Made by a program: the position numbers and the translations under genes. A DNA stretch of 9,965 nt. It comes from Octopus sinensis. Taxonomy: Eukaryota. The first letter of the stretch is position 1. Each line of letters opens with the position of its first letter. The notes below the pieces were generated by a model. It was not told where the DNA came from and searched no databases. It was given only the letters and a program-made list of their open reading frames with translations. Positions 1 to 9,965 of this stretch are shown here, one piece after another. The stretch spans positions 1-9,965 of the forward strand of contig NW_021827669.1 of the NCBI RefSeq assembly GCF_006345805.1. Reading direction: 5' to 3'.

Positions 1-2
1 AT

Positions 3-260
3 GGTGAACGTTTTATTCCTCGAGGCCAGTATAGCCTTTTTGCCAATCCAATCCATATTCTGATAATTAGCTTGTAGATCTGGGAACACTGCATCTCTGA
101 GATCAGAAGGCGTCTTAACAATGGTACAAATGGAATCGATGGCAATATTACCATTTTCATCCCCTGGTATTTTGCCTTCGCCAAGTGCAAGGAGGGTGTG
201 AGGAAATGCTGCTGATGTGATATTACGTCGCATATGAGCTCGCATATTGGTGTAAAGTTT
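3..260 (-). pseudogene. Helitron RepHel PIF1-type helicase fragment, open to the left window edge
   Basis: Manual minus-strand translation: KLYTNMRAHMRRNITSAAFPHTLLALGEGKIPGDENGNIAIDSICTIVKTPSDLRDAVFPDLQANYQNMDWIGKKAILASRNKTFT. It matches the Helitron/PIF1 pattern L..NMR...F...LL..G.G...VFP....Y....W....AILA..N. Absent from the ORF track because no stop is reached inside the window. An in-frame TAA lies just upstream (276-278). Confidence 0.85.
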
Positions 261-492
261 GAGAGTTACTTCCCTTTATTTAAAGAAATATGCATTAAAA
301 TGGGAGAAAATGATGGTAAATTATTTGTAAAATCGTAGACTCATCGTAGATGCGCACTAATAGGCAGAAGGGCTCGATATGAATCGCGACTATAAGATAC
401 CCGGTTTTGGTTAAACTGCATCGCAAAATCTGGGAGTAGTTAGGAATCTAAATCGGAGTAGACAGACACACAACCTTTCTTTTATATATAAA
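261..492 (-). mobile_element. Putative 5' terminal segment of the same Helitron (non-coding)
   Basis: Minus strand starts A|TTTATATATAAAAGAAAGGTTGTGTGTCTGTC, resembling the A|TC-TATATAT.. starts of non-autonomous Helitrons (C would be mutated to T). It is contiguous and co-oriented with the helicase fragment. Based on resemblance only. Confidence 0.45.
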
Positions 493-523
493 TATTTTCG
501 TCCTAAAAAACTTTGTAATAGAC

Positions 524-1618
524 ATCTTCCAGATGTATATTATGGCATATCTTTCCCGCCTACGCTCCAAGGAATATAGTTTTAATCTCTTGAGTCTTTC
601 CCAGTAGCTTATTTTCTGCATAGAGGCTATCTTCTTCGTATAGCTACGTTTGATCGCCTCAAGTTCTGTGATCAACTTGACACTGGATGGTGACCATAAC
701 TGAGAGCAATAGTCAAAGTGGCTTAGGATGAGTGTCCTCCAGAGGACCATCATGGTTTCTTGTTCTAAAGGTTCTGAGAATCCATCCGGCCAGTCGTCTA
801 CATTTCATTGCCAATTTAGCAACATGTACACGAAAGGTTGCGTCATCACTCATGTAAATACCCAGGTCACGCACTGATTGTGTCTCTGGGATTGCAATTC
901 CTCCGGGTCCAGTGTATTCATTGGGTATTGCATTCAGTTTTGCATGCTGATAGTATAAATCTTGAAACTTTTCAGCATTGAACTGCATGCTATTCTTTTC
1001 AGCCCACTTGTATATTTTGTCCAGCTCACATTGCAGGTGTTTAGTGTCCTCAGGGTTCTGTATTGCCTGTGAAACTTTTGTATCGTCTGCATAACTTGTG
1101 ATCGTGGCTCTCTGCGTGACTGAGGGCATGTCTGAGAGGGCCATTATGAACAGTAGTGGTCCCAAAACAGTGCCCTGCGGAACACCGCTCACTATTTGCG
1201 TGTTAATGGAAGTGGCCTCATTAGCTACTACCACCTGACTTCTATCTTTCAGAAAGTCATGAAGCCATTCTCCCAGTTTTCCAACTATGCTGAGATCACG
1301 CAGTTTGTGACATATCATTCCATGATCGACTTTATCAAAGGCCTTTGCAAAGTCGAGATATATCACTTCCACATTTGAGTGGTTGAGCAGTCGTTTCGGC
1401 ACCCAGTCATAGTGTTGTAGGAGCTGAGTTAAACAGCTTCTCCCTGGTCGGAAACCATGTTGGCGGGGCGGGCGCAAGTCATTTTCTTCAAGGAAGGTGA
1501 TCAGTTTCCTTCTGACTATTCGTTCCATGACCTTGCTGATGTGTGAGGTGAGAGAGATAGGTCTGTAGTTCTTGGCCTCCGCTCTGCTACCTCCTTTATG
1601 AATAGGGCATATTTTACC
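524..1618 (-). pseudogene. Reverse transcriptase domain and thumb of LINE copy A
   Basis: Motifs [76 protein letters not shown]. Confidence 0.93.
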
Positions 1619-2398
1619 TTACTTCAGTTCTCTTGGAAGTTTGTCAGCTGCAAGGGAGCTCTGAAAGAGGAACTGCAGTGGGCTTGCTAGGACTCTCTTA
1701 CATACTTTTAGGAGGATTGCCGAGAATCCATCGGGGCCAGTAGCTGAGTCTGTTTTCATTTCATCTATAGCCTTTATTACATCGTCTTCCTTTATATCGA
1801 TGTAATTTATCGTCACCGCCTCTGATTTTATATCTGTAGTGGTAAAGAAGTCAGTTGGATTTCTGATTTGGAAATGCCCAAGGGGTGGAGTGAAAACACT
1901 CTTGAATTGCTCATTCAGTATTTCACTTACCCTCATTGGTTTTCCTGTGAGTGTGCCATCCTTTTCAAGGAGTGGCCCTATCCTACAGTGCACCGTAGTT
2001 GTTTCTTTTGGCATACCTGTAGAAAGCTCTGGGGTTAGATTTTATGTTGTCTATAGACCAGGCTTCTTTGTCTGCTCTTTCCTTTTCATGGGAGAGTTGC
2101 AGACATTTTTCAATTTCCAACAGTTTTATTTTCAGGCGGGACTTTTGACTGCTTTCAATTTGTTTGTTTAGGCGATTTGAAATTTTTGTACGCCGTCTCA
2201 TTAAAATTTTCCTCTCACTGGGGATTTTGTTCTTGTGTACAGTGGCCTTTCTCTCTGGGACACATTTGTAGCATATGGCTTGCATTACAGACATGAATTG
2301 TTGAAGTTTCACGTCGATGTCTGGCGAGGAGAGACATTCAGGCCAGTTTTGTTTGAGGATCTCTTTCTCAATTTGTTTCCAGTTTGCCTTATGGAAGT

Positions 2399-3033
2399 TC
2401 AAGCTGGAAAGATTCTGAGGGTTCTTGTAGGCTGCATGTCCATGCTTTCCTTTGGCCCGTCCATGGTCAGCTCTACCATGTTGTGATCCGAGAGTAGTGT
2501 CGGTGTCACTTTCACATTATGGATGAGATCCATATTATTTGTGAAGCAGAGATCCAGTGTGTTACCTGCCCTGGTTGGTTGGAGTATTACTTGCTCCATG
2601 TACAGGGTGTTGATGAGGTTCAGGAGGGACCTCGCCTGTCCTCGTTCACATCTTGTCATTCCTGGGAGAGAAAGGCCCTCGGGCCATCTGACATTGGGTA
2701 GATTGAAGTCTCCCATAAGAAGTACACTTATGTGTTGTTCTATCGTGATTAGAACTTCTATTTTTATAAGGCAGTCTTCAAACTTGCCTACATGGCTTGG
2801 AGCATCTGGAGGGTGATATGTAGCACACACAACTACATCAAGTTGCCTTATATGTATAATTAGTGTGTCACACACCGAGTTTGAGTATGACAAAAGGACC
2901 TGGGGTGTTAGGTCCTCACGGATGTACATAGCAACTCCTCCATGACTCCTTTCTTTTCTGTCGGTCCGTTGTACAACATACTGTGGTATGTGTAATTCCG
3001 CATCTGCTATGTCCGTTTCAGGTGCATTTCCGT
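2399..3033 (-). pseudogene. APE (apurinic/apyrimidinic-like) endonuclease domain of LINE copy A
   Basis: Motifs TE(M)HL [frameshift] ..RTDR..GGVAMYI, YHPP, MGDFN, PTR..NTLDL, SDH. Confidence 0.9.
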
Positions 3034-3041
3034 ATATATGT

Positions 3042-3104
<63 letters not shown>

Positions 3105-3128
3105 CATGATATATATATATACGTATAT
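3034..3128. repeat. Imperfect (TA)n microsatellite separating the two LINE copies
   Basis: Direct inspection. Confidence 0.95.
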
Positions 3129-4279
3129 ATACTCAAACCAACTAGGGCGAATAACATTGTGGGTCACTGCTTTACGAACAATATGGACATCATTCATGAT
3201 TTGAAAGTGACACCGACATTAGTTTCGGATCACAACATATTAGCGCTGTCTATGTTTGGGCTGAAAGTATCCAGAAACATACAGCATAAAGGAAGCACCC
3301 GAAATCACTCCAATCTGAACTTCCACAAAGCAGGTTGGAAATTGATCCAAAAAGAGATCCTCAGAGAGGACTTGCCGGAATGTCTCTCTACACCAGACAT
3401 TGACATGAAACTAGAATGTTTCATGTCTTTTGTGCAAGCTGTATGCCAGAAATTTGTCCCATGTCCCAGAGCACAAGGCCAAAACATATAGAAGGAAGAT
3501 TCCAAGAGACAGGAAGATCCTCATGAGACGACGGACGAAGCTTGCAAATCGTCTCAACCAACATCCCAAAAGTAGTGAAATGTCCCACCTAAAAACAACA
3601 CTGATGGGATCGAAAAAACGCTGCAACAATCCTATGTGAGGGAGAAATCAGACAAAGACACCTGGGTTATAAAAAACATTAAATCAAACCCAAAGGCCAA
3701 TTTTTCATTACGCGAAAGAAACAGTCTCAGTACACTACAAGATAGGACCACTCCTCCAAAAGGATGGCTCCCTCACAGACAGTCCAACTAAGATCAGTGA
3801 GATGCTGAATGACCAGTTCAAAAGTGCCTTTCCCACCCCGTTGGAAAACAGACAAGTGAACGAATGAGTGGACTTCTTTGCCGCCTCACAATCAGCGAGG
3901 CGGTTACAATAGAATGTAATGATATTAGCGAAGAAGATGTCCTAGTAGCCATAGATGAAGTGCACACAAACTCAACTACTGGTCCAGATGGTTTCCCAGC
4001 AATCCTCCTCAAAGTGTGTAATCATGCCCTGGCAAAACTCCTCAAGATTCTCTTCCAGAGCTTTCTTACAAATGGCAAATTGCCAAGCAAGCTGAAGGAG
4101 GGAATAATAAGCCCAATACATAAATGGGGAGGTAGAGCAGATGCTAAAATCTATAGGCCTATCTCTCTGACTTCACACATCAGCAAATCATGGAACGGAT
4201 AGTCAGAGTTAAACTAATCGCATTCCTTGAGGAAAATAACTTGCTAAGTGATACCCAGCATGGTTTTCGACCAGTGCGT
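3129..4279 (+). mobile_element. CR1-like LINE copy B fragment (end of APE, linker, start of RT), disabled
   Basis: [78 protein letters not shown]. Collinear with copy A (~2586 down to ~1440) on the opposite strand, with several frameshifts. Confidence 0.9.
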
Positions 4280-4384
4280 GGTCCTTCCCTTTTCCTTGTG
4301 TTGATGGCTTGTCCATCTGCCTCGTGTCTCTGCGGCAGGGTCCCCGATGTGCAAAGCGGCAGCCTGCACCTTCCTTTCCATGCC

Positions 4385-5107
4385 ATATATATAAATATAT
4401 ATATATATACATACATACATATATATACATACATATATACATATATATATGTATACATACATATATACATATATATATATACATATATACATATATATAT
4501 ATATACATACATATATACATATATATATATATACACATATATATACAGACATATACATATATATACAGACATATACATATACATACATACATATATATAC
4601 ATACATATATATTTATATACATACATATATATTTATATACATACATATATATTCATATACATACATATATATATATAGATACATATATATATATTTACAT
4701 ATACATACATATATATATATAGATACATATATATATATTTACATATACATACATATATATATATAGATACATATATATATTTACATATACATACATACAT
4801 ATATATAGATACATATATATATATTTACATATACATACATATATATATATATAGATACATATATATATATTTACATATACATACATATATATATATATAG
4901 ATACATATATATATATTTACATATACATACATATATATATATAGATACATATATATATATATACATATACATAATTATATATATAGATACATATATATAA
5001 TATTACATATACATACATATATATATATAGATACATATCTATATATTTACATACTATATAGATATATATATATATATTACATATAATACATATATATATA
5101 TTTACAT

Positions 5108-5150
<43 letters not shown>
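4385..5150. repeat. Compound (TA)n/(TACA)n microsatellite with a ~44-bp higher-order unit in its distal half
   Basis: TTTACATATACATACATATATATATAGATACATATATA-type unit starts at 4694, 4738, 4780, 4824, 4870 and 4916, then degenerates. Confidence 0.95.
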
Positions 5151-5151
<1 letters not shown>

Positions 5152-5272
5152 CAACAATAAGGAACGGCCATAATAGGCCATTCACCCACTAGAAATAACA
5201 GCCAAAGCTTCAACCGAAAAAAACATCAATTCCGCAAACCAGGAGAAAATTAAAAAAACACTTTACCCTGTA

Positions 5273-5379
5273 GTTCCTTATACGATGCACCGTTTCATCT
5301 ATTGTTTAATGGTAAACTAACCTGATTAAATTAAATCAAGCTAGTCTTCCATAGGCCGATAGATTCGTCAGTAAAGAAC
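5273..5379 (-). ncRNA. Type I hammerhead ribozyme, unit 1, core intact
   Basis: Minus strand: GUUCUUUA-CUGACGA-AUCUAU[56 nt]AUAGAU-GAAA-CGGUGCAUCG-UA|UAAGGAAC. Stem I 8 bp (one U.G), GUA triplet, predicted cleavage between 5281 and 5280. Confidence 0.88.
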
Positions 5380-5755
5380 AGCCAGATCGGAGCAGATATT
5401 TAGACGAGGCACTTCTATCACTGTCTCGGCAATATCTGACCTAAAATTTTCAAATCATCGCACTCGCGCCAAATTATCGGCAGCAAATATAAGCCGCCGA
5501 TTCCATTACGGAATAACCAGAAAATTCATAATTAATCAATATAGGGTGGCAAAAAATTTCGTAGAATTCTTTTGCCACCAGCGGCCTAGTGGGGAAAAAA
5601 ATTAAATAGTCATAGACCATTTATAAATTCAACAGCAACAATCAAGGAACGGCCATATAGGCCATTCACCCACTAGAAATAACAGCCAAGCTTCAACCGC
5701 AAAACAACATCAATTCCGCAAACCAGGAGAAAATTAAAAAAACATTTACCCTGTA

Positions 5756-5862
5756 GTTCCTTATATGATGCACCGTTTCATCTATTGTTTAATGGTAAAC
5801 TAACCTGATTAAATTAAATCAAGCTAGTCTTCCATAGGCCAATAGATTCGTCAGTAAAGAAC
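5756..5862 (-). ncRNA. Type I hammerhead, unit 2, G16.2>A variant (AUA triplet, C15.2.A16.2 mismatch), probably impaired
   Basis: Plus strand reads TTATATGATGC instead of TTATACGATGC (C>T at 5766, a CpG site). The rest of the core is intact. Confidence 0.8.
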
Positions 5863-6229
5863 AGCCGATCCGAGCAGATATTACACGAGGCACTTCTATC
5901 ACTGTCTCGGCAATATCTGACCTAAAATTTTCAAATCATCGCACTCGCGCCAAATTTATCGGCAGCAAATATAAGCCGCCGATTCCATTACGGAATTAAC
6001 CAGAATTCATAATAATCAATAGGGTGGCAAAAAATTTCGTAGAATTCTTTTGCCACCAGCGGCCTAGTGGGAAAAAATAAATAGTCATAGACCATTTATA
6101 AATTCAACAGCAACAATCAAGGAACGGCCATAATAGGCCATTCACCACTAGAAATAACAGCCAAAGCTTCACCGCAAAACAACATCATTCCGCAAACCAG
6201 GAGAAAATTAAAAAAACATTTACCCTGTA

Positions 6230-6333
6230 GTTCCTTATACGATGCACCGTTTCATCATTTTTAATGGTAAACTAACCTGATTAAATTAAATCAAGCTAGT
6301 CTTCCATAGGCGATAGATTCATCAGTAAAGAAC
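6230..6333 (-). ncRNA. Type I hammerhead, unit 3, CUGAUGA core
   Basis: Plus TCATCAG (6319-6325) gives CUGAUGA, a change at the free N7 position. GUA triplet intact. Small deletions in the stem II base. Confidence 0.8.
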
Positions 6334-6711
6334 AGCCAGATCGGAGCAGATATTTACACGAGGCACTTCTATCACTGTCTCGGCAATATCTGACCTAAAA
6401 TTTTCAAATCATCGCACTCGCGCCAAATTTATCGGCAGCAAATATAAGCCGCCGATTCCATTACGGAATTAACCAGAAAATTCATAATTAATCAATATAG
6501 GGTGGCAAAAAATTTCGTAGAATTCTTTTGCCACCAGCGGCCTAGTGGGAAAAAATTAAATAGCCATAGACCATTTATAAATTCAACAGCAACAATCAAG
6601 GAACGGCCATAATAGGCCATTCACCCACTAGAAATAACAGCCAAAGCTTCAACCGCAAAACAACATCAATTCCGCAAACCAGGAGAAAATTAAAAAAACA
6701 TTTACCCTGTA

Positions 6712-6819
6712 GTTCCTTATACGATGCACCGTTTCATCTATGTTTAATGGTAAAAAACTAACCTGATTAAATTAAATCAAGCTAGTCTGCCATAGGCCGA
6801 TAGATCGTCAGTAAAGAAC
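6712..6819 (-). ncRNA. Type I hammerhead, unit 4, one A missing at position 9/10.1
   Basis: Plus TAGATCGTCAG versus consensus TAGATTCGTCAG. May be a sequencing indel. Confidence 0.75.
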
Positions 6820-7198
6820 AGCCAGATCGGAGCAGATATTTACCCGAGGCACTTCTATCACTGTCTCGGCAATATCTGACCTAAAATTTTCAAATCATCG
6901 CACTCGCGCCAAATTTATCGGCAGCAAATATAAGCCGCCGATTCCATTACGGAATTAACCAGAAAATTCATAATTAATCAATATAGGGTGGCAAAAAATT
7001 TTCTTAGAATTCTTTTGCCACCAGCGGCCTAGTGGGAAAAAATTAAATAGTCATAGACCATTTATAAATTCAACAGCAACAATCAAGGAACGGCCATAAT
7101 AGGCCATTCACCCACTAGAAATAACAGCCAAAGCTTCAACCGCAAAACAACATCAATTCCGCAAACCAGGAGAAAATTAAAAAAACATTTACCCTGTA

Positions 7199-7305
7199 GT
7201 TCCTTATACGATGCACCGTTTCATCTATTGTTTAATGGTAAACTAACCTGATTAAATTAAATCAAGCTAGTCTTCCATAGGCCGATAGATTCGTCAGTAA
7301 AGAAC
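7199..7305 (-). ncRNA. Type I hammerhead ribozyme, unit 5, core intact
   Basis: Same sequence as the unit 1 motif. Predicted cleavage between 7207 and 7206. Confidence 0.88.
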
Positions 7306-7445
7306 AGCCAGATCGGAGCAGATATTTAGACGAGGCACTTCTATCACTGTCTCGGCAATATCTGACCTAAAATTTTCAAATCATCGCATTCGCGCCAAAT
7401 TTATCGGCAGCAAATATAAGCCGCCGATTCCATTACGGAATTAAC

Positions 7446-7489
7446 AATAATATTTACATATACATACATATATATATATATATAATATC

Positions 7490-7520
<31 letters not shown>

Positions 7521-7539
7521 ATATATAATACATACATAT
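7446..7539. repeat. Imperfect (TA)n/(TACA)n microsatellite
   Basis: Direct inspection. Begins with the same TTTACATATACATACATATAT motif found left of the array. Confidence 0.92.
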
Positions 7540-8512
7540 TGTTACGGAAACCGGCCATTGCTCAAACTCGAACCCGGGACCCTAGTAAGTCGAGCGACGA
7601 CGATTGACCAGCTCAGTCGAACAGGAATCCGCCACACAGAGAGGAAATGGTGGTGGAGGATGGCAGCGAACTCGAACCGTTGACTGGAGAAAACAACAAC
7701 AAAAGCAGGAAGAGATAGAGAAACGGCGGAAGGTAATTTGCTTACATTTATGAACAGTTTATACAATTATTAAAACATCAAATAAAACGTGAAACATAGC
7801 AGATACATTAAAGAAAATAACATGCAACAGAATTAAAAAGAAAAACAACCAATGCATTTAAACATAACACATCGTTCGAAAACAATCAAAGGCATGCACA
7901 ATACAAGTCCGAAGACAGTCTACGCAATATAGAGTTCGAAACAGTTCAACATTAAAGTCTTTCTCCTTCTTTCTTTTTCTCTTCAACACAATTCACAATG
8001 TTCTTTATAGTCTCATTTCTTTTCTTCCTCTTTTCCTTCTCTTTTTTTTTTGACACAATTTTTTTTTTCTTTACAACAGATTGCAGCTTATGTCACAATC
8101 CTTTCTTTTACATTTCACATCAAAATATAAACAAAACATACTGTTACAAGCTCCTGCTACAATAGCCGTGCCCTTCCGCTGTAATCTCTCTCTTTCGCTC
8201 TATATGTCCCCAATGCTATCTGCCTGTCTTTTTCACCACGCTTGTCATCCTCTCGCTTGTCATCTCACACATTCACTGTCTGTCTTTCTCAACGTTGTTG
8301 TTGCCTCCCACCATCGCCACCTTCTTGGCTGACCGTCCGTATCACTACTGTCTTTTGCCCAGCTGCCCTGTTGCCAATTCACTGTCTCAGGCAGAACTGA
8401 CCTGTTGCCATCTCACAATCTCAGGCAGAACTAACCTGTTGCCATCTCACTGTCTCAGGCAGAACTGCCAAACAAACCCAGCTGATCGCATTTTAAAGGG
8501 TGGTTTCTTACA
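7540..8512 (-). mobile_element. Possible LTR (Gypsy-like termini) of an LTR retroelement remnant
   Basis: Minus strand begins TGTAAG (8512), directly after a purine run AGGGAAAG (8513-8520, PPT-like), and ends CGTAACA (7540). Non-coding, with internal short tandem repeats. No TSD, second LTR or gag/pol seen. Confidence 0.35.
8367..8467. repeat. Three tandem copies of a 34-bp unit
   Basis: CCTGTTGCCATCTCACTGTCTCAGGCAGAACTRA at 8367, 8401 and 8435, head-to-tail with no spacers. Confidence 0.92.
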
Positions 8513-8670
8513 CTTTCCCTGACCGGAAAAGGGTCAGAGGTCTCTTCCAAACCCATTAATCTCTCCAGAAAATAACAGAACAAAGTGCAATAATTTTTTT
8601 TCCAGATTCTTCGACTACACACCAACGAAAACTGTGTCATAGAACTTTTTCTCAACTGACCTCCATATCA

Positions 8671-8730
8671 ATATATATATATTTATATATACATACATAT
8701 ATATATATATACATATATATGTATAAACAG

Positions 8731-8761
<31 letters not shown>

Positions 8762-9064
8762 CATATATATATATAAACAGATATATATATACACATACAT
8801 ATATATATATAAACAGATATATATATATATATATATACATACATATATATATATATATACATACATATATATATATATATACATACATATATATATATAT
8901 ATATACATACATATATATATATATACATACATATATATATACATACATATACATACATATATATATATACATACATATATATATACATACATATATATAT
9001 ATACATACATATATATATACATACATATATATATACATACATATATATATATAATATATATACA
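8671..9064. repeat. Compound (TA)n/(TACA)n microsatellite
   Basis: Direct inspection. The variant TATAAACAGATA occurs three times. Confidence 0.95.
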
Positions 9065-9741
9065 TATATAAATTTATATATGAGGATAATATCGATATTT
9101 AAGTGTCGAAATTATTAAGTGGCCAGCATGAAGAAATACCTTACAAGGTAAAAAAATTTTTAACAATTAAAAATGAGGGTCTAAAAGACACCAACATGCC
9201 GAAATAGCAGTCGAAACACTGACTATAGTACCACGTTAAATGTTCATATCGCACCATGAGGTAAAGCGGAGGGACAAAACATACAAGCAAAAATTTTTGA
9301 ATAATTCAAGATCCAAGGATTTCTGGTTCTGCTTTAGATAAGCTTTACCGTCATCATTGAATATTCAAGGGTACATAAATACAGATATATATATGCACAG
9401 CAAACGATATACTTACATATACGAGCGTCGTACATACATACATATGCACGTATGGACACAGCCAGTTTGAATCGCCCGCCAAATCACCGCATAAGTATGA
9501 TATGGTTAAAATAAGCACCGCAGTGAATATAATATAACAAAGAATTATATAAATTGTATATGAGGATAATATCGATATTTAAGTGTCGAAATTATCAAGT
9601 GGCCAGCATGAAAGAAATACCTTACAAAGGTAAAAAAATTTTTAACAATTAAAAATGAGGGTGTCTAAAAGACACCAACATGCCGAAATAGCAGTCGAAA
9701 CACTGACTATAGTACCACGTTAAATGTTCATATCGCACCAT
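9065..9741. repeat. Second ~480-bp repeat family: one full unit plus a ~195-bp partial direct copy
   Basis: TGAGGATAATATCGATATTTAAGTGTCG at 9081 and 9561 (480 apart). Identity continues to ...TATCGCACCAT at 9257 and 9741. Confidence 0.92.
9297..9368 (-). ncRNA. Degenerate type I hammerhead-like motif, position 3 missing
   Basis: UUGAAUAUUCAA-(_)UGAUGA-CGGU..ACCA-GAAA-UCCUUGGA-UC|UUGAAUUAUUCAA. Stem I 12 bp with one bulge. Confidence 0.5.
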
Positions 9742-9965
9742 ACGCTCGTATATGTAAGTATATCGTTTGCTGTGCATATATATATCTGTATTTATGTACC
9801 CTTGATATATTCAATTGATGACGGTAAAGCTTATCTAAAGCAGAACCAGAAATCCTTGGATCTTGAATTATTCAATAATTTTTGCTTGTATGTTTTGTCC
9901 CTCCGCTATTTCGGCATGTTGGTGTCTTTTAGACACCCTCATTTTTAATTGTTAAAAATTTTTTT
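9742..9965. repeat. Inverted copy of the second family, running off the right edge
   Basis: 9742-9907 is the reverse complement of 9265-9428. 9905-9965 is the reverse complement of 9632-9692 (equivalent to 9148-9208). Confidence 0.92.
9802..9875 (+). ncRNA. Degenerate type I hammerhead-like motif, UUGAUGA core
   Basis: AUUCAA-UUGAUGA-CGGUAAAGCUUAUCUAAAGCAGAACCA-GAAA-UCCUUGGA-UC|UUGAAU. Deviations from consensus: C3>U and a C10.1.A11.1 mismatch. Confidence 0.58.

Follow-up and report, generated by a model that had tools for sequence, protein, structure and literature searches.

A tandem repeat with a type I hammerhead motif in Octopus sinensis, probably a partly decayed retrozyme-like array

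Tandem repeats with type I hammerhead ribozymes (HHRs) have been described in several animals. Newt satellite 2, Sm-alpha of Schistosoma and pDo500 of Dolichopoda are of this kind (PMC6155905, PMC2837043), and so are the metazoan retrozymes lacking long terminal repeats (non-LTR retrozymes), whose repeats have 150-450 bp and whose circular RNAs (circRNAs) have 170-400 nt (PMC7229834). In those of Mytilus galloprovincialis (~350-390 bp), cleavage is slow and the archetypal nucleotides of the contact between loops are missing (PMC7229834). Cephalopods were reported to carry Penelope-like elements (PLEs), with Naiads as remnants (PMC8557442). None of the papers searched describes a retrozyme in cephalopods, and of these a PLE survey alone mentions both. 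Here we analyze a stretch of 9,965 nt of Octopus sinensis (assembly GCF_006345805.1, contig NW_021827669.1, positions 1 to 9,965; hereafter the window), which contains, at 5151-7445, an array of ~485-bp units with a hammerhead-type motif on the minus strand. Our results suggest that this locus is probably a partly decayed genomic copy of a repeat of the non-LTR retrozyme or hammerhead-satellite type. By our analysis, the hammerhead-type motif in this retrozyme-like tandem repeat is real, and cleavage, circles and mobility would be expected from what is known of the family.

The tandem array that the initial annotation had claimed was recovered by Tandem Repeats Finder (TRF) as a single array at 5150-7445, with a period of 486, 4.8 copies, 96% matches and 2% indels. 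Four full units are flanked by partial ones, of ~238 nt at the 5' end and 131 nt at the 3' end; phased at the predicted cut site, the full units measure 487, 482, 474 and 483 nt. No open reading frame (ORF) of the array exceeds 48 aa. By TRF, unit alignment and ORF check, the array on the minus strand and its unit are non-coding, and no similarity links the unit to other parts of the window. The unit had been placed at the long end for its class, with a hint that the family might be undescribed. Its 474-487 bp are indeed slightly above the 150-450 bp given for retrozyme repeats (PMC7229834), but they are comparable to the ~500 bp of pDo500 (PMC2837043), and length by itself is thus not a sign of novelty.

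The minus-strand consensus unit contains a complete type I hammerhead, in which helix I is open and helices II and III are closed. The canonical copy reads GUUCUUUA / CUGACGA / AUCUAU...56 nt...AUAGAU / GAAA / CGG-UGCA-UCG / U-A^ / UAAGGAAC, with the caret at the predicted cut. Helix I pairs GUUCUUUA with UAAGGAAC over 8 bp and is followed by an internal loop, GCU/UA. Helix II is closed and has 6 bp plus a long imperfect extension (~56 nt), for a total of 68 nt. Helix III has four pairs (A-U, C-G, G-C and G.U) and a UGCA loop, and the cut-site triplet is GUA. The first strand of helix I, GUUCUUUA, starts on the minus strand at 7305, 6819, 6333, 5862 and 5379, and a script search located CUGANGA at 7297, 6811, 6325, 5854 and 5371; on the plus strand, CUGANGA is absent from the entire window. 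The A17 of the triplet before UAAGGAAC, also located by script, is at 7207, 6720, 6238, 5764 and 5281, with spacings of 487, 482, 474 and 483 nt, so the five cut sites and spacings given in the initial annotation were correct. The consensus and copies 1, 3, 4 and 5, numbered along the minus strand, keep the core positions (C3 U4 G5 A6 N7 G8 A9, G12 A13 A14, A15.1-U16.1 and H17). The sole core substitution among copies is a C>U change in copy 3, at N7, which is free to vary. Helices I and II each exceed by 2 bp the canonical design of 6 and 4 bp, which retains the 2-bp offset between them (PMC4209133).

The class of elements with which the locus had been compared (newt satellite 2, Sm-alpha, pDo500, non-LTR retrozymes and the pLTRs of PLEs) is the right one, and the structural reading holds for the consensus. 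As in the metazoan non-LTR retrozymes, the repeats are non-coding and arranged head to tail, and each unit carries a single type I hammerhead, always on the same strand (PMC7229834). As in the elements of M. galloprovincialis, the archetypal nucleotides of loops 1 and 2 are missing, and the host genome is mollusc-like. The differences from metazoan retrozymes are a longer unit (474-487 bp, against the 150-450 bp quoted), a helix II of 68 nt where retrozymes have ~4 bp and a loop, A-U as the 10.1-11.1 pair, the lack of recognition by Rfam, and the fact that just two of five ribozymes are intact. With newt satellite 2, Sm-alpha and pDo500 the locus shares a tandem repeat with a type I hammerhead (PMC6155905, PMC2837043), a short helix III whose palindromic loop favors a dimer of two hammerheads, and, for pDo500, a close unit size. 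Unlike these satellites, it has four pairs in helix III instead of one or two, a far longer helix II, and was seen as one short array. The hammerheads of PLEs are also of type I and arranged in tandem; their helix II is enlarged, their loop 1 is ill-defined, and their helix III is small and palindromic (PMC4209133). Like PLEs, the array sits in a microsatellite such as (TA)n, and its long spacing between CUGANGA and GAAA resembles the HHR_half_core of Naiads (PMC8557442), but it has no ORF for reverse transcriptase (RT) or GIY-YIG endonuclease between or beside the repeats. Finally, it differs from min-HHRs, which have a helix I of 4-5 bp or less, against 8 bp here, and which lack the helix III that is present here.

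How often would such a motif arise by chance? We scored motifs with a descriptor that counts contiguous pairs adjoining the core, with G-U allowed. In dinucleotide shuffles of the unit (both strands, every phase), 0 of 20,000 reached helices I/II/III of 6/4/3 bp, and 14 reached 4/3/3. First-order Markov sequence of the same composition as the unit (142 Mb-strand) gave, per Gb-strand, 725 motifs at 4/3/3, 155 at 5/4/3, 77 at 6/4/3 and 7 at 6/5/4, and no motif at the 8/6/4 of the canonical copies; extrapolation via the pairing probability gives ~0.4 per Gb-strand at this grade. A multi-Gb genome could hold a few chance motifs of such grade, and the motif alone is not significant genome-wide. The consensus space of tandem-repeat families is smaller than the genome by many orders of magnitude, which makes an 8/6/4 motif very unlikely to arise there by coincidence; we infer an expectation of ~1e-4 or less. 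Besides, some traits that the descriptor does not include fit the type I hammerheads carried by repeats, namely the permutation, the palindromic tetraloop on a short helix III and the 2-bp offset (PMC4209133).

Several observations weigh against an assignment of the locus to the retrozymes, and some concern the motif itself. We searched Rfam release 15 (4227 families, including all hammerhead models) and obtained no hammerhead at the gathering threshold; at E<=10 there was none on the array (5100-7500) or on a single motif (7185-7320), and nothing appeared except weak noise from hairpins resembling miRNAs and snoRNAs. The Infernal search with the Hammerhead_1 model, which had been proposed as a check of the motif, was thus negative. 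This silence is probably caused by a helix II spanning 68 nt, of which 56 nt are extension, and by its first pair, 10.1-11.1, which is A-U and not G-C. A G-C pair at this position is nearly universal in hammerheads and contributes to a metal site. Moreover, helix II lacks a short terminal loop 2, and the canonical contacts between loops 1 and 2 cannot therefore form as described. The internal loops that follow the 8 bp of helix I and the 6 bp of helix II could, speculatively, replace these contacts.

Folding speaks for the motif at helices I and II and raises a difficulty at helix III. The 120-nt motif has a minimum free energy (MFE) of -38.3 kcal/mol (z = -5.5, with shuffles at -20.8 +/- 3.2). 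Its MFE structure includes helix I, whose pair probabilities are 0.6-0.99, and helix II over its full length, with 0.92-0.97. In this structure, helix II starts with 6 bp and, past a C.A mismatch, one G-C pair; a 4x4 internal loop leads to 4 further bp, which an A.A mismatch separates from a 14-bp hairpin whose loop is UAAUUU. In the place of helix III, A6-C7-G8-A9 pairs with UCGU. Constraining copy 1 to the hammerhead fold gives -36.2 kcal/mol, against -38.3 for the MFE, at a cost of only 2.1 kcal/mol. In the ensemble, helix III has an occupancy of ~4%, against ~55% for the competing ACGA/UCGU pairing that sequesters A6-A9. The sequence of helix III and its UGCA loop, ACGGUGCAUCGU, is a perfect 12-nt palindrome, which is worth -1.2 kcal/mol as a hairpin and -19.5 as a 12-bp intermolecular helix. 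This matches the short helix III, palindromic loop and dimeric mode known from type I hammerheads of metazoans (PMC4209133; Figure S8 of PMC3088659). Newt, schistosome and Penelope hammerheads have this trait as well, and cleavage by double hammerheads, in which multimers are active and monomers quiet, has been described for the newt and other hammerheads carried by repeats (PMC4209133; PMC6155905; PMC3088659). Given so weak a hairpin and so strong a dimer at helix III, cutting would most likely take place in the double-hammerhead mode.

The state of the five copies also speaks against an active locus. The full topology had been claimed for each unit, and this stands for the consensus and for copies 1 and 5, but not for the other three of the five. 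Copy 1 (7199-7305, minus strand) is canonical, with helices of 8/6/4 bp, CUGACGA at 7297-7291, GAAA at 7222-7219 and a predicted cut 3' of A7207. Copy 5 (5273-5379, minus strand) is identical to it, with the same 8/6/4 bp and a predicted cut 3' of A5281. Copy 3 (6230-6333, minus strand; nominal A17 at 6238) is weakened: it has CUGAUGA, and the 3' strand of its helix II reads AAUGAU instead of AAUAGAU, which leaves 3 contiguous bp, so that its helices of 8/3/4 bp are still accepted by the descriptor. Copy 4 (5756-5862, minus strand; nominal A17 at 5764) is also weakened, and the descriptor rejects it for helix III, where a change of G16.2 to A creates a C:A mismatch and turns the triplet from GUA into AUA. 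The same copy has a C>U change in helix II that improves the structure, since a U-A pair replaces the C.A mismatch and the helix reaches 8 bp. Copy 2 (6712-6819, minus strand; nominal A17 at 6720) is defective and rejected by the descriptor. One A is deleted at its CUGACGA/A junction, such that either A9 is missing or an extra unpaired U lies beside G12. The 3' strand of its helix II has a second 1-nt deletion, the extension has a UUU insertion and an A>C change, and helix II does not form in its MFE structure.

The two canonical copies are thus at opposite ends of the array and are not adjacent. Activity of a retrozyme has been tied to at least two consecutive complete HHRs (preprint 10.64898/2026.07.22.740005). 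No adjacent pair passes here, because copy 3 passes in a relaxed sense and copies 2 and 4 fail; with two of five ribozymes canonical and non-adjacent, the locus does not qualify as an active retrozyme by this standard. The initial annotation had proposed that a read-through transcript would release ~480-nt monomers. With only these two canonical ribozymes, set apart from each other, a clean cutting into five is not expected.

We also compared the divergence of the copies inside and outside the ribozyme. Aligned in a phase that keeps the motif whole, the five copies are 96-98% alike and show 47 differences from the consensus. Of these, 14 are in the 107-nt motif (535 sites, 2.6%), against 33 elsewhere (1770 sites, 1.9%; Fisher p = 0.30). 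Core conservation had been named as a check of the motif, and it showed no preferential conservation (2.6% against 1.9%), although five near-identical copies give such a test almost no power to reveal constraint. All 47 differences are private to single copies, which implies that the ancestral unit had an intact motif. The copies have since diverged by drift, with no selection visible in the alignment, and this is what one would expect of a mobile element after its insertion. There is an odd excess of indels of 1-3 nt, which make up 29 of the 47 differences and are often in short homopolymers. A neighboring long interspersed nuclear element (LINE; 448-2929) is likewise riddled with frameshifts. 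The excess suggests uncorrected errors of long reads, in which case some of the damage to the copies may be artefactual, and copy 2 may be intact in the real genome.

We found no relatives of the unit in viral contigs, metagenomes of the Joint Genome Institute (JGI) or protein collections, and thus have neither covariation nor dispersal to bring in its favor. An exact 27-mer of the region of helix III and the cut site had 0 matches in viral contigs. The pattern of the core and helix III with a free helix II, CTGANGA-N(50-80)-GAAACGGTGCATCGTA, had two matches in JGI metagenome contigs (L002 831-928 and L003 1052-1144). We rejected both as relatives: they are GC-rich and coding-like, lack the flanking helices and tandem repeats, and their number is about that expected by chance for 22 specified bases. 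The spurious ORFs of the unit had no exact matches in protein collections, and a word-based protein search gave no candidates.

The monomer itself is strongly structured. Folded as a circle, the minus-strand monomer has an MFE of -147.0 kcal/mol (z = -6.1), with 61% of its nucleotides paired in a fold that is branched and not rod-like; it is thus predicted to be highly self-paired, as are the circRNAs of retrozymes (PMC7229834). The plus-strand circle reaches -109.2 kcal/mol (z = -6.6). Since z is around -6 on both strands, an asymmetry of folding is uninformative; we discarded it as a sign of the functional strand, which folding does not identify. The units contain a near-perfect hairpin, GGUGGCAAAAGAAUUCUA(A/C)GAAA(A)UUUUUUGCCACC, on the minus strand at 6987-7022, 6501-6535, 6023-6057 and 5545-5579, to which Rfam gives a weak mir-5728-like score (17-19 bits, E 3-10), far under gathering. 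Further perfect hairpins are found in the unit, e.g., AUCGGCGGC...GCUGCCGAU. They are all probably just part of a self-paired, retrozyme-like fold.

The position of the array brings PLEs into the discussion. In the sense of the minus strand, its 3' end abuts an AT-rich (TA)n/(TATG)n tract of 766 bp with ~50-nt periodicity (4385-5150, found by TRF), a candidate insertion target, and its 5' end abuts a 90-bp tract of the same kind (7450-7539, found by TRF and comparison of the flanks). The sequence TATGTATGTATATGTAAAT is present on both edges, which indicates that the array interrupts one microsatellite. We rejected TATGTATGTATATGTAAAT as a target-site duplication, because it is the repeating unit of the surrounding tract, and no such duplication can be scored there. 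PLEs have a documented insertion bias for microsatellites, including (TA)n (PMC8557442), and the position of the array is compatible, if weakly, with the Penelope-like partner favored for animal retrozymes (PMC7229834; preprint 10.64898/2026.07.22.740005). The argument is weak because similar tracts are frequent in the window (3033-3131, 8671-9081). Also, a Pfam search of the window revealed no Penelope-like ORF or GIY-YIG protein. In the flanks of the array it identified an Exo_endo_phos_2 domain at 2399-2929 and an RVT_1 domain at 713-1528, both on the minus strand and both of LINEs of the apurinic endonuclease (APE) type, to which the sole RT of the window belongs.

These results must be weighed against other explanations. 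The array might be an ordinary satellite or minisatellite, produced by unequal crossing-over, with a coincidental hammerhead-like motif that never cleaved. This fits the silence of all Rfam hammerhead models, the atypical A-U at 10.1-11.1, the 68-nt helix II without a canonical loop 2, the lack of preferential conservation of the motif among copies, and the failure to find relatives in viral contigs, JGI metagenomes and the protein search. It also fits the few motifs of such grade expected per multi-Gb genome, since the discovery scan was genome-wide. We nevertheless regard a coincidence as distinctly unlikely. The space of tandem-repeat consensus sequences is tiny, which brings the inferred expectation for an 8/6/4 motif to the low value given above, none of the 20,000 shuffles of the unit reached even 6/4/3, and the motif has family traits that were not asked for (type I permutation, palindromic tetraloop, 2-bp offset and strand specificity). 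The array might also be a remnant of an autonomous PLE, i.e., a tandemized pLTR or 3'-end fragment that lost its ORF and does not belong to an independent retrozyme family. In the pLTRs, which form partial tandems, the hammerheads are of type I, helix II is large, and helix III is small and palindromic (PMC4209133, PMC8557442); PLEs prefer microsatellites including (TA)n, and the array is in such a tract. The half-cores of Naiads, with CUGANGA and GAAA 35-50 nt apart, are reminiscent of the 68-nt spacing found here (PMC8557442), and a 2026 preprint derives retrozymes from pLTRs (10.64898/2026.07.22.740005). Yet, neither RT nor GIY-YIG is encoded in or beside the array, the only RT of the window is that of an APE-type LINE, the 4.8 short units are arranged head to tail and are not two repeats flanking ~3 kb, and the unit has no sequence in common with the rest of the window. 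We therefore consider a PLE remnant unlikely.

The motif might also be an active hammerhead serving the host without retrotransposition, e.g., by cutting satellite or long non-coding RNA for the production of small RNAs or heterochromatin. Newt satellite 2 and pDo500 were long seen as transcribed satellites whose mobility was undemonstrated (PMC2837043, PMC6155905), and the unit is packed with perfect hairpins. But decay is equal inside and outside the ribozyme and three of the five copies are damaged, which is not the pattern expected from selection by the host, and the current literature assigns such repeats to the retrozyme class (PMC7229834). This explanation seems to us very improbable. 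We also discarded an integrated circular RNA agent resembling viroids or hepatitis delta virus, in which ribozymes of both polarities are expected: the plus strand has no CUGANGA, and no other Rfam ribozyme family was found.

If the array is a copy of a retrozyme-like repeat, what is known of the family suggests how it would work. A read-through transcript of the minus strand would fold hammerheads cutting 3' of A17, leaving monomers of ~480 nt with 5'-OH and 2',3'-cyclic phosphate ends. Cutting would most likely involve double hammerheads between neighboring units of the multimer and be disfavored in the monomer. The monomers might then be circularized by an RtcB-type tRNA ligase, and be copied and inserted in trans by the RT of a retroelement, for which a PLE is the favored candidate in the literature. 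At this locus, the canonical form is confined to copies 1 and 5; copy 2 is broken, and the motif is weakened in copies 3 and 4. For this array, a fossil or a weak producer is more likely than a master copy.

Other repeats are present elsewhere in the window. Two related fragments of APE-type LINEs, at 448-2929 on the minus strand and at ~3141-4330 on the plus strand, lie head to head around (TA)50. The minus-strand fragment has its endonuclease and RT split across at least five overlapping ORFs in different frames, and the plus-strand copy is cut short by microsatellites on either side. The best named relatives of the flanking RT are in Octopus bimaculoides (63%) and Argonauta hians (60%), followed by crustacean proteins (~46%); its ORF has no exact match on record, and its close homologues are on short contigs that are uninformative about the repeat. 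A tail shared between the unit and the neighboring LINEs, as in a partnership of a LINE with a short interspersed nuclear element (SINE), was rejected because the similarity is not above noise. Just upstream of the array and its microsatellite, at 7540-7600 on the minus strand, CTAGGGTCCCGGGTTCGAGTTTGAGC resembles the B box of tRNA genes and might belong to a tRNA-derived SINE. A SINE of this kind beside the array was rejected, as ARAGORN identified no tRNA in the window. There are four AT-rich tracts within 10 kb (3033-3131, 4385-5150, 7450-7539 and 8671-9081), some with ~50-nt periodicity, and every boundary of a repeat element in the window adjoins one of them, which suggests insertion hot spots or growth of microsatellites at the ends of elements. 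Finally, the region 8363-8467 contains 3.1 copies of a 34-bp unit, CTGACCTGTTGCCATCTCACTGTCTCAGGCAGAA, with 87% identity and a strongly negative GC skew, and has no recognizable ORF or Pfam domain.

Overall, our results bring no new mechanism and settle no long-standing question, since the multimer, its self-cleavage, the circle and the action of an RT in trans were already described in other animals. An unusual helix II probably hides from covariance models an element that is otherwise of a known kind. There is a modest chance that the array represents a cephalopod family of retrozymes, characterized by a type I hammerhead with a rod-like extension of helix II of ~56 nt and an A-U pair at 10.1-11.1, which standard descriptors and covariance models would miss. 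Should the consensus unit cleave, the class of retrozymes and hammerhead satellites would extend to a cephalopod genome, and a natural type I hammerhead would tolerate a helix II of 68 nt and an A-U pair at 10.1-11.1. Screens based on Rfam would then miss such variants, and searches with short-helix-II descriptors would under-count them. If a family with a long helix II is active, mobile elements carrying hammerheads would be under-counted as well. The half-cores of Naiads, in which CUGANGA and GAAA are 35-50 nt apart (PMC8557442), might then be real hammerheads with a long helix II, and Naiads, currently taken to lack the hammerhead, would have one.

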